Sequence record: LR756501.1
Direction: 5' to 3' (one strand)
DNA length: 64,000 nucleotides
A program made the position numbers and the translations under genes. Below the pieces are notes generated by a model. That model made no database searches, was not told the DNA's origin, and was given only the letters and a program-made list of their open reading frames with translations. Positions 10,119 to 12,548 of the stretch are shown piece after piece; position 1 is the stretch's first letter; every line of letters starts with the position of its first letter.

Positions 10119-12548
10119 TTACTTTTTAACTGTTGATGTTTTTGGTTTCAATTTTTCTGCTACACCTTCTAAAAGAGGTTCTAATGAAGAACCTTTGATA
10201 GTATCTTGTAGAGATTTAAATCCACCGTTTTCACCAAAGAAACCATTGCTTTGTTCCTTTAGATTTCTTGCTAAAATCTCTGTCTGACTTACACCACCAA
10301 TAGTGATAAGAGCTTCGATTAATCCTGGTTGGATTGCTTCGAGTTTTCTTCTTGTCTCTTCAATTCCTATCTCTGTAAGTGCTCTCTTAGTCTCGATTTC
10401 TAAATTATCTGATTTACTCTTATCCGACAAATCAATGTCGTTGAGAGCACTGCCGAATTCAGTATCAGCTAATTTCATTTTTCTGTTACCTTCGTTCAAC
10501 TTATCTTCTTCATTCAATTTTTCAAGTGCCTTTTTGATTGAAAGAATTTCAGTTGTTGCAGTTTCCATTATCTTATTTCTCTGAATAGTCTGTTGAGCTT
10601 TAAAAAGTTCTTCATCTTGTTTCAAAGACATGAAACTCAGATTATTCTGAATGGTTTTCTTCTGAACTGCTTTTAAAAGATTATCAATTTCTTGATCGTC
10701 TATGCTAGTTTGAAGAACCTCTACATCATAAATCTTCATTCCATTCTCTTCAAATTTTCTGCCTGGTCTCTTTTGTCCTTCTACTGATTTACCTAAGATA
10801 GTATCTCTGATTAAATCAACTCCGTTCTTCTGGAATTCATCTACTGATACCTTCTTAATAGTATTTCTAAGGATCGAACGAATGTTCTGTGTAAGTAATT
10901 TAACATAGTTTGATACAGTAAACCAATTCTTAGCGTGAGATTCTTCAAAGTTAACTCTGTAAGAAAGTCTAATTTTGAGTTTTACCATATCAGAAGTTTC
11001 AGCCTCAATAATATCAGAAACAATATTATTACTGATTTGTAAGTAAGCAGTCTTCAAAAGATCGTGATCTGTCTTTGGTTTGCCTGTTGAAAGTTCCATT
11101 ACCTCTAAGGTTTCGTCATATTCCAACATAATAACTTTAGGACCGATTTCGACTCTTCTATCACCTTTCTTACTGATGACTTGTACTGCGTATCCTGGCC
11201 ACACATTGATATTAACCGCTCCATCATATTTAGTATCTAAAGTTATGGTTCTTGGTTTTGTAAATGAACTCTTCCTCTTTAATTCGTCAGAGAAAGCAGC
11301 TGGGCCAGCTGATGATACTGCTCCATAAACTTTATTAACAGCATTTGAGTAAACAGTTGATGCTACGTAACCTCTTGAGAGAGTCTCTGGGGAATTCATT
11401 AAAGAAATTTTAGCCAATTCGTCATTGTGCTCAATTGCTTCAGAATTACCCGGAAACATAACTGCTATAGATTTCTTATCCAAGATACGTTTAATAATAA
11501 CCTTTTTTCTTGGATCTGGAAGTAACATCAATGGACCTTTGACTAAATCAATCTTACCACTTTCTTTATCCAATACGTATCTTGCTTCACCATCTGGGAC
11601 GGTAACTGCGTAATGGATAGGATCTTGATTATCATATGTCACTATTGAGTGCTCTGGTCTTGGGTAATAAATCTTAGTTTCTTTACCTGTGATAAAGAGC
11701 TCTTCACCAGCTTTAAATTCAACATCACCTTCTTTATAATTGGCTATAACCTTAATATAAAGTCCCATATTTTCATTGAGTTCGATGGCTTTAAACTTAC
11801 GTTTACCTTCTTTCTCAACAAAATTTTCAGTAGGCTTTGGAAAAACCACAGCTGGACCGTTTACAAATCTTTTCTCACCATTTTCATCTAAAAGAATACA
11901 ATATTCTAACATTTCTAAGGTCTCAGCCTTGCGAATATAATTGTTTCCTTCTAACGGTATGACTTCCATACCTGTTGGTGGAATAAAAAAAGATACGTCA
12001 GTACCTTTAATAACTATAAGCTTACCTGTAACTAAATTTGATTTATCAAAAATATCTTTCTTGCTTTCTTGATTAGTAATAACAACAGATTTCTCAATGT
12101 TCTCACGAACTTCCTTGTCGTTATAAACTCTTGCGATAAGATATTCATTTGATTTTAATTGGTGCCCATCGATAACCCTGGCTATTTGTCCTGGGTAAAG
12201 AGCGAAAGTATCAGGACCAGAAATGTTTATTTTCTTCCCGATTGATAAAGTAGCGGATTGTTTTGATTTTGATCCTGGGTGTCTGTTAAACGTCTCAGCA
12301 TCAACTTGAGGATTAACTAGTTCGATATATTGGCCTTCAGTTGCCTTTATCCAAGCTAGTATCGCTTCCAGCTTTGAGTCGCATGGTACGAATTTACTAG
12401 ATTTTGGATCGTAAGAGACTAACTTATCTGTATCAGATAAACTTGTCTTAAACGGTCCAACGATTACTTCTACATTTCCAATTGTGCCATCTTGGATGAA
12501 TGCGTACATCCCCTGGGATAGTACGAGATCGCCTTTTTTGTCTTCCAT
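10119..12548 (-). CDS. Major vault protein (MVP) homolog
   Basis: Tandem beta repeats ([32 protein letters not shown]), then AVQV..[56 protein letters not shown] (MVP shoulder/SPFH domain), then a long cap helix. Confidence 0.85.
   Translation of the reverse strand: [809 protein letters not shown]

Follow-up and report, generated by a model that had tools for sequence, protein, structure and literature searches.

Can a bacteriophage encode a full-length major vault protein (MVP), and what purpose might such a protein serve? The question is raised by an 809-residue open reading frame (ORF) in LR756501.1, a 735,411-bp record of an "uncultured phage" that carries no annotation. The stretch analysed here, referred to as the window, comprises 64,000 nucleotides of this record (record base 7061 is window base 1), is free of N stretches, and is 100% identical to LR756501.1 and to its duplicate, LR756503.1. 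A sequence-only reading had proposed that the ORF is phage-encoded, represents a near full-length MVP and has its own terminator; the perfect match to a phage record bears out the first point, and the observation as a whole was confirmed in all details. The gene is a true full-length member of the MVP family, belonging to a phage branch of the prokaryotic MVP-like family.

A full-length major vault protein in a huge phage

The ORF is intact, with an ATG start and no internal stop (Table 1). Among all PDB chains, the only significant phmmer matches of its product are major vault proteins (rat, human and rabbit; E 6e-20 to 4e-19). The strongest of these alignments (281 residues; E=6e-20) spans positions 445-725 of the query, with weak collinear segments in the repeat region. 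Within it, HMMER aligns query 485-534 to residues 499-547 of rat/human MVP (SLSAGRPKRPHA...), reproducing the proposed parallel between ELSTGKPK in the phage protein and SLSAGRPK in its eukaryotic counterparts. In Pfam, the MVP_shoulder model (PF11978) is matched at aa 507-616 with 99.9 bits, where the cut-off is 25 (E=1.2e-28), over positions 2-116 of the 118 in the profile, and Vault_3 at aa 454-503 (E=4.9e-11, 43 bits against a cut-off of 28.8); none of the remaining Pfam vault-repeat models matched above cut-off, and PHROGs, NCBIfam and PADLOC returned no meaningful family. A family profile built from a 57-sequence alignment, with about 170 invariant columns, matches human MVP at E=2e-31. 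Here, profile positions 453-762 correspond to human residues 461-821 (last repeat, shoulder, cap-helix and start of the cap-ring); in the repeat region, human residues 274-409 are the collinear counterpart of profile positions 216-350. These MVP matches are far above chance level.

The Pfam Band_7 model also matches, marginally above its cut-off (aa 507-645, E 9.3e-06, 26.2 bits against 23.6), and overlaps the MVP shoulder, whose own fold is of the SPFH type. An alternative is thus that the protein is an SPFH scaffold of a membrane microdomain, of the flotillin or HflK/C type, that organises or inhibits a membrane protease or transporter of the host. When the AlphaFold2 model was compared with the PDB by Foldseek, the top 12 matches were full-length MVP chains (E 1e-25 to 1e-22, 770-950 aligned columns), whereas SPFH cages (flotillin, HflK/C, prohibitin, QmcA, erlin and stomatin) formed a second tier at E of about 1e-7 to 1e-5, some 15 orders of magnitude weaker. 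The murine MVP R1-R7 crystal structures (3gnf, 3gf5) were matched at E~3e-6. The outcome that would have spoken against the proposal, namely a best match confined to generic SPFH/flotillin proteins lacking MVP beta repeats, was not obtained. The SPFH/Band-7 cages likewise combine an SPFH shoulder with a long helix, which forms the cage wall, but they are membrane-anchored and lack the beta-repeat barrel; in the phage protein, about 500 residues of MVP-type beta repeats stand in place of the N-terminal anchor. No membrane segment was found in the whole protein (maximum Kyte-Doolittle 19-mer value 1.23), nor is there an NfeD or FtsH-type partner gene nearby. We therefore consider a membrane scaffold very improbable, and the earlier functional proposal, of a vault-like or membrane-associated cage that shields nucleic acid or sequesters defence proteins, is speculative, its membrane-associated variant being disfavoured. 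Since it has no hydrophobic segment, the protein lacks the anchor typical of SPFH scaffolds and is regarded as soluble.

The proposed domain order, namely N-terminal beta repeats, a shoulder and a long C-terminal helix, is present in full according to both Pfam and the AlphaFold2 model, and homology to MVP extends along all three parts (Pfam, profile and Foldseek). The model consists of beta structure alone at aa 14-351 and 446-504; an alpha/beta shoulder follows, and then a single continuous helix at aa 619-736; the predicted local distance difference test (pLDDT) is mostly 80-90 over aa 445-735.

Table 1. Coordinates of the MVP gene, its parts and its signals, and of selected related features. 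Positions are those of the window unless a locus number (L) is given; aa, amino acids.
Feature	Position	Strand	Basis
MVP-homolog gene, 809 aa + stop	10119..12548	-	ORF, Pfam, PDB, Foldseek
N-terminal beta-repeat region, aa 1-355	11484..12548	-	all-beta model, profile, Foldseek R1-R7
Variable low-confidence insert between repeats, aa 356-444	11217..11483	-	pLDDT, conservation
Last vault repeat (R9 equivalent), including keyhole-loop start, aa 445-505	11034..11216	-	Vault_3 aa 454-503
Keyhole-loop equivalent, aa 487-497	11058..11090	-	alignment to human MVP
Shoulder (SPFH-like) domain, aa 506-618	10695..11033	-	MVP_shoulder aa 507-616; pLDDT about 80-89
Cap-helix, single, about 118 residues, aa 619-736	10341..10694	-	DSSP helix, pLDDT mostly 80-90; aligns to human cap-helix
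C-terminal tail, aa 737-809 + stop	10119..10340	-	short helices 754-766, 778-783, 790-799
Intrinsic terminator	10068..10099	-	GC core stem-loop 10074-10093, U-tract 10068-10073; sequence and folding
A/T-rich intergenic leader 5' of MVP, 69 bp	12549..12617	-	sequence
NADAR-domain gene	2995..3474	+	Pfam 5.7e-26; weaker: NADAR anti-phage family, PADLOC PDC-M42C
tRNA array; tRNA(CUA)	L003:309-6181; 10155-10227
tRNA array; tRNA(CUA)	L022:4239-9406; 13489-13564
tRNA array; tRNA(CUA)	L025:666-7618; 13542-13615

The N-terminal region contains about 6-7 vault-type repeats, a count that is not rigorous, with pLDDT values of 50-75 and a poorly predicted stretch at aa 209-264. An internal-repeat scan detected only weak units (about 17-64, 219-243, 324-373 and 457-481; probability 40-63%), which have the motif G-x-x-x-V-x-GP in common. 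The insert that follows has pLDDT <50 at aa 385-442 and a mean column identity of 0.51, and it explains the change of offset relative to human MVP in the profile alignment. In the last repeat, pLDDT is 81-86 at aa 451-480 and 66-71 at aa 481-500. Conservation is highest at aa 216-355 (mean column identity 0.79) and aa 445-505 (0.80), followed by the shoulder (0.74). The tail is modelled with low confidence (pLDDT 41-59) and has invariant residues at P741, N762, G775 and G776; it is possibly the equivalent of the cap-ring.

Eukaryotic MVP (rat, human and rabbit; 4V60, 7PKZ, 9BW5, 9R86, 9Z4W) has the same collinear domain order, at an identity of about 17-19% in structural alignments. The phage protein is about 50-85 residues shorter. 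Its sequence suggests roughly one N-terminal repeat fewer than in human MVP, offset by a variable insert of about 60-90 residues, and its cap-helix, as modelled, looks shorter than that of mammals, which have about 50 extra residues over shoulder, cap-helix and tail. Among the viral models in BFVD no phage MVP was found. The best viral match there was an 802-aa "prohibitin domain-containing protein" of Harvfovirus sp. (A0A3G5A4K1; E 1e-9, about 840 columns), which may be an MVP-like protein of a eukaryotic giant virus on the basis of the modelled fold; the matches after it were generic Band-7 proteins.

In the window, the gene is flanked by small hypothetical genes, and its transcription unit ends at its own terminator, as had been claimed. 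On the minus strand, about 20 nt past the MVP stop, a strong stem-loop is followed by a U-tract (CUGGGAGA-GAAA-UCUCCCAG, then UUUUUU). The stem can be extended to 14 bp, and the structure has a folding energy (dG) of -20.6 kcal/mol (z=-3.98), with 0 of 200 shuffled sequences folding as well. No Shine-Dalgarno sequence is visible in the 69-bp leader; a sigma-70-like match (9/12 at 12617-12590) is weak and equally frequent in shuffled sequence. Since no terminator was found between MVP and the gene directly upstream (12618-13082, minus strand), the two may be co-transcribed. The product of the upstream gene matches the Pfam family "putative phage metallopeptidase" (E 3.6e-09) and contains zero histidines, and for this reason is not an HExxH zinc peptidase.

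Family size, phylogeny and earlier reports

Prokaryotic and viral MVPs have been reported from in silico work. Bacterial homologs were found in Myxococcales, Cytophagales and Oscillatoriales in 2019 (10.1101/872010), "major vault-like" genes were mentioned in passing in pig-gut relatives of a huge phage (10.1101/2021.05.20.444921), and the "first viral MVPs" were described with models and a tree in two gut phage metagenome-assembled genomes (MAGs), with the statement that only two MVP-bearing viruses existed (10.1101/2023.11.10.566534). A predicted vault protein has also been reported for Borg elements. Phage MVPs are thus already described in silico, in preprints of 2021 and 2023, and the present protein is a further member. 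The two gut phages, Caudoviricetes sp. ctOa11 and ct2Ri15, are uncultured tailed phages whose MVPs are likewise full-length at about 810 aa and encoded outside structural modules. By description they have presumed Firmicutes hosts, whereas the phage described here has a 735-kb genome, and its protein comes from a far larger, deeply branching family.

This family is far larger and older-looking than published, and it is strongly conserved across at least 50 phage lineages. In a 90%-clustered database, at least 5,959 protein clusters matched significantly (counted among 8,000 scored candidates), the top matches lying on contigs of 200-736 kb; many of the homologs are already labelled "major vault protein" by JGI. 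An exhaustive HMMER scan of 1.84 billion 50%-identity representatives gave 1,120 clusters at E<=1e-3, of which 557 reach E<=1e-30, and nearly all of the top 150 are similar in length. Relatives are present on at least 174 IMG/VR viral contigs, many of them 100-500 kb long, and in 323 GTDB species genomes, among which are chromosomes, complete or nearly so, of Nannocystis, Polyangia, Thermoflexibacter, Vulcanimicrobiota, Riflebacteria and Sericytochromatia. Within a collection of 50,697 phage records, relatives were found only in LR756501.1, LR756503.1 and LR756500.1 (462 kb, 47% identity), and none in a cultured phage.

A tree of 120 sequences was calculated, in which cellular sampling was drawn from the best 80 matches to the phage query. 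All 50 clearly cellular sequences form a single supported clade that is ordered by phylum and does not include the window protein, whereas the phage sequences surround it in several deeper clades. The window MVP groups with contigs of huge phages, the nearest (L006, on a 597-kb contig) being 70% identical. With a fragment of human MVP as outgroup, the root falls among the phage clades and the cellular clade is nested (support 88). This root is tentative, because the outgroup branch measures about 2.9 substitutions per site and the human fragment was not kept to its homologous region by MAFFT; tentatively, then, the sampled cellular MVPs of prokaryotes appear to nest within phage diversity. Seven rows from MAG contigs also fall in the phage clades: L140 (381-kb contig, Saccharibacteria bin), L093 (Parcubacteria), L090 (Methanosarcinales), L163 (Promethearchaeota), L088, L089 and L091. 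They are short contigs or come from implausible bins (bacteria of the candidate phyla radiation (CPR), archaea), and are probably mis-binned phage DNA and not of CPR or archaeal origin.

The bacterial MVP-like proteins (Myxococcota, Cytophagales/Saprospiraceae; 10.1101/872010) are 42-46% identical to the phage protein over the full length and have the same architecture, with a shoulder detectable as Band-7. This level of identity leaves room for the idea that the gene is a passenger, recently taken from a bacterium and without a phage-specific role, for example as an amino-acid store; a role as an auxiliary metabolic or storage gene was proposed for the gut phages (10.1101/2023.11.10.566534). 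However, several deep and diverse phage clades, set against 50 cellular sequences in one nested clade, are unlike the outcome of repeated recent capture, and in at least 50 phage lineages conservation is strong from end to end of the protein. We regard a mere passenger as barely credible.

Assembly, genomic neighbours and possible roles

Every structurally characterised relative self-assembles (the MVP 78-mer and the cages of flotillin, HflK/C, prohibitin, stomatin and erlin), and by analogy the phage MVP probably does so as well, laterally, into a closed ring or dome. In all of the top Foldseek matches, neighbouring subunits touch laterally through the shoulder and the long helix. Protomers would join side by side through these two parts, and an isolated helix of about 175 A is unlikely to be stable in a monomer. 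As the protein has no membrane anchor, the product would be a vault-like shell free in the cytoplasm of the infected cell. Such a shell might contain, or serve as a scaffold for, a Ro60-like (TROVE-vWA) protein and small RNAs or tRNAs, and the translation apparatus might thereby be protected or repaired against RNA-targeting defences of the host.

The last two steps draw on the neighbours of MVP genes in other phages. ORFs from 10 kb of flank on either side of MVP were clustered into families and compared between 60 cellular loci and 95 phage-like ones, the latter representing 50 lineages at <70% MVP identity; individual loci are given L numbers. A DUF2828+DUF7788 protein is encoded directly upstream of MVP, on the same strand, at 22 of the 95 phage-like loci and in 6 of the 50 lineages (L043, L048, L051-L053, L055, L059, L061-L063, L066, L069, L074, L075, L080-L087; for example, L080:7962-9497, plus strand). 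Across the vWA/MIDAS domain it is homologous to TROVE proteins (95.5% probability in hhalign). DUF2828 proteins are predicted to be Ro60-fold TROVE-vWA proteins, because the AlphaFold model finds full-length Foldseek matches only in Ro60/Rsr structures; the top 10 matches include Rsr of D. radiodurans (2nvo), Ro60 of Thermus phage phiLo (9l5y), and Ro60 of Xenopus and human, with 1yvr also in the list. Canonical TROVE proteins are encoded 2-4 kb downstream of MVP at 7 loci (3 lineages), so that 9 of the 50 phage lineages have a gene of the Ro60 fold no more than 10 kb from MVP.

Several families linked to RNA repair recur in the same flanks: the RlaP "RNA repair pathway" nucleotidyltransferase (25 loci, 8 lineages), RNA ligases in two clusters that merge on iteration (20 loci, 7 lineages), and a P-loop kinase resembling polynucleotide kinase (12 loci, 6 lineages). 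Three families of metallophosphoesterases also recur, each at 15-26 loci in 6-10 lineages. Of 258 tRNA genes in 1.84 Mb of MVP flanks, 257 are co-oriented with MVP and 203 lie upstream. At least one tRNA gene is found near MVP in 21 of the 50 phage lineages and at least three in 11, compared with 3 of the 60 cellular loci; the share of 42% of lineages compares with about 17% of random windows of the same size in LR756501.1. In L003, L022 and L025, an array of 8-20 co-oriented tRNA genes is followed by MVP, by a tRNA(CUA), which has an amber-suppressor anticodon, and by a canonical TROVE gene (Table 1). Altogether, 29 of the 50 phage lineages have a tRNA, a Ro-like (TROVE or DUF2828) gene or an RNA-repair gene within 10 kb of MVP. 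No Ro-like or RNA-repair neighbour was found at the 60 cellular loci. Seven of these (L142, L158, L149, L094, L098, L136, L161), and also the phage contigs L018 and L021, have a response regulator of the sigma-54 type (NtrC-like) no more than 6 kb from MVP; in L142 and L158 it lies just 60-72 bp downstream. An 862-aa "partner" in cellular loci was rejected as an antisense-ORF artefact of simple gene calling in high-GC genomes. The small RNA RAGATH-33 (RF03102; 140 and 123 bits) was detected at L043:2218-2330 and L080:6126-6254, in both cases in the tRNA region that precedes the Ro-like and MVP genes.

The proposed role in RNA biology would parallel the partnership of MVP, TEP1 (a TROVE protein) and vault RNA in eukaryotic vaults. 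The combination of MVP, a TROVE protein and a small RNA, familiar from Ro60/Rsr with Y RNA and from TEP1 with vault RNA, is echoed in the gene neighbourhoods of 9 of the 50 phage lineages, often with tRNAs nearby. The phage TROVE-type proteins resemble Ro60, and, unlike TEP1, they have no NACHT, WD40 or TIR-like domains. TROVE and SPFH/Band-7 modules were reportedly proposed as RNA-repair scaffolds by Burroughs and Aravind in 2016. In comparative genomics of jumbo phages, ROT/TROVE proteins, RlaP, RNA ligases and NADAR have been described as equipment for counter-defence and RNA repair (PMC7824862).

A number of observations weigh against a self-assembling cage with a role in RNA biology. The AlphaFold2 monomer scores only moderately overall (mean pLDDT 64, predicted template modelling score 0.34), scores of this order being expected when a multi-domain monomer is elongated. 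Conservation of the cap-helix is poor (0.45), and heptad periodicity is absent from it. There is no universal partner, as no ORF family lies beside MVP in more than 10 of the 50 lineages, and the neighbourhoods of four relatives are mutually unrelated, with no conserved operon. Adjacency of DUF2828 is limited to one MVP clade with 56-100% identity. Ro-like genes are frequent in large phages without MVP (695 DUF2828 and 60 TROVE records) and thus do not need MVP. The excess of tRNA genes is about 2-2.5-fold, nominally about 4.7 standard deviations in a binomial calculation that treats lineages as independent, which they are not, and takes its background from one genome. In 21 of the 50 lineages there is no RNA-related neighbour, and these include the lineage of the window and those nearest to it (L006, L001, L013, L024). 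No experimental study of a bacterial or phage MVP was found in the searched literature.

The genome that carries the window gives a similar picture. No Rfam family, tRNA (ARAGORN) or TROVE protein was detected in the 64-kb window, and no homolog of TEP1, PARP4 or vault RNA, the companions of MVP in the eukaryotic vault, was identified. Pfam scans of 31 of the 52 window ORFs of at least 120 aa showed no PARP domain, without a dedicated PARP search. With the rest of LR756501.1 scanned piecewise, the genome has one MVP gene, one NADAR gene, one Ro60-like DUF2828 gene (340780-342225), one RNA ligase gene (181657-182565, within a tRNA region) and 59 tRNAs, with arrays at 170-229 kb and 359-367 kb and two tRNA(CUA) genes at about 691 kb; a canonical TROVE gene was sought and not found. 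The Ro-like gene is about 321 kb from MVP and the nearest tRNA about 150 kb, which counts against an RNA role at this locus in particular; among Ro-like, RNA ligase, tRNA and NADAR genes, only NADAR lies within 150 kb of MVP. Since the Ro-like gene, RNA ligase and tRNA arrays are unlinked to MVP here, the RNA link rests on other lineages. It is a real but moderate statistical association in those lineages, which amounts to no demonstrated partnership and is no property of this locus. The two tRNA(CUA) genes are adjacent (690585 and 690663) and may mean that, in part of the genome, amber codons are suppressed or a stop codon is recoded.

Taken as a whole, a soluble, self-assembling cage of the vault type, most probably with an RNA-centred role, is the reading we favour, tentatively and at a little under an even chance. 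An RNA-centred purpose involving Ro60-like proteins and tRNAs or small RNAs is the best-supported of the purposes considered, and on its own a doubtful one. It is unlikely that large phages go as far as to build a true vault-type ribonucleoprotein (RNP), in which an MVP shell would house a Ro60-like protein, tRNAs or small RNAs, and RNA-repair enzymes.

Less likely again is a nucleotide-binding cage or "sponge", in which the keyhole pocket would bind NAD+, ADP-ribose or related signals and would buffer NAD+ or soak up immune signals. In human MVP, the keyhole loop lines a pocket between neighbouring shoulders that binds NAD+, ADP and ADP-ribose (PMC12280208; 10.64898/2026.05.01.722283), the pocket residues being R504, K506, R507, P508, H509, R511, L517, D521, F522 and W545 (PMC12280208). 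In the phage family, the most invariant motif, S487-T-G-K-P-K-x-D494, coincides with this loop, human R504/P505/K506/R507/P508/H509/R511 being aligned to K490/P491/K492/T493/D494/H495/L497. Of 57 family members, 55 have K at position 490 and 31 have H at position 495, while P491, K492 and D494 are invariant. However, several key contacts of the human pocket are consistently replaced (R511 by L, D521 by N, W545 by V, and R507 by T or S), and conservation of the loop could equally reflect subunit packing. From the sequence, the pocket thus appears to be conserved in part only, and nucleotide binding is putative.

Gene context is similarly divided on such a sponge. NADAR genes lie within 10 kb of MVP at 21 of the 95 phage-like loci and in 8 of the 50 lineages, from several clades, adjoining it in L031, L090, L043 and L049. 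The NADAR gene of the window (Table 1) is the sole recurrent MVP-neighbour family found there, and is context, not shown to be a partner. Window 23797-24717 (plus strand) encodes a MazG pyrophosphohydrolase fused to a nicotinate/nicotinamide mononucleotide adenylyltransferase (TIGR00482, 124 bits, above cut-off), a phage enzyme of NAD+ synthesis that possibly acts against NAD+ depletion by the host. Yet large phages in general commonly carry NADAR and NAD+ salvage genes (PMC7824862), and the adenylyltransferase was rejected as a recurrent neighbour, as relatives occur near MVP at just two other loci.

The MVP might also be a virion-associated structural protein, such as an internal head shell, a decoration protein or an ejected protein, a possibility raised before (10.1101/2023.11.10.566534). 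It is a large shell-type protein with inferred self-assembly in a phage with an enormous genome, and the window contains large, repeat-rich, putative structural genes. These lie at 46233-59109 (plus strand) and encode proteins of 1,550 aa and 695 aa with common fn3-like repeats, followed by four tandem paralogs of about 350 aa (54844-59109; 30-42% identity). Tail fibres are one possibility for this run, other surface proteins another. Against a place in the virion, the MVP gene stands alone among small hypothetical or auxiliary genes, no capsid, portal or tail gene recurs beside it, its product matches no PHROGs structural family, and close homologs are present in ordinary bacterial chromosomes (Nannocystis, Thermoflexibacter, Polyangia). 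We give this alternative only a slender chance. What probability remains falls to some function outside the readings discussed here.

Two further genes of the window were characterised. A gene at 14398-19473 (minus strand) encodes a protein of 1,691 aa without an informative family, whose first 740 residues or so include 17 or more strongly hydrophobic segments and whose C-terminal half is made up of tandem repeats of about 85 aa (WKKGP..W..GVG...FVKYLIEIEK...). At 29007-31220 (plus strand), a hybrid sensor histidine kinase is encoded, with strong matches to PAS, HisKA, HATPase_c and receiver domains.

Implications for vault biology

To our knowledge, the function of vaults has been an open question since 1986, mechanistic work has all been carried out on animal vaults, and knock-outs have had weak phenotypes. 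Phage MVPs, together with the cellular clade in culturable bacteria such as Nannocystis and Thermoflexibacter, offer simpler systems for the study of assembly, cargo and fitness. The present analysis corrects the published impression of just two MVP-bearing viruses, and adds the size of the family, the nesting of its cellular members, and the location of MVP in a genome region with tRNA, Ro60-like or RNA-repair genes in many phage lineages. The recurrent Ro60-like, RNA-repair, NADAR and tRNA neighbours lead to testable hypotheses: in phage-host conflict, MVP might have a role centred on RNA or one centred on NAD+/ADP-ribose. Both echo the eukaryotic vault, with its TROVE-domain subunit and small RNAs on the one hand and its binding of NAD+ and ADP-ribose on the other. 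Vault shells of prokaryotes or phages, if they self-assemble, could serve as nanocontainers that can be expressed in bacteria. Should large phages indeed build a vault RNP, the partnership of MVP and TROVE proteins would either predate eukaryotes or have a viral history, and the nesting of all sampled cellular MVPs of prokaryotes within phage diversity is consistent with such a history.

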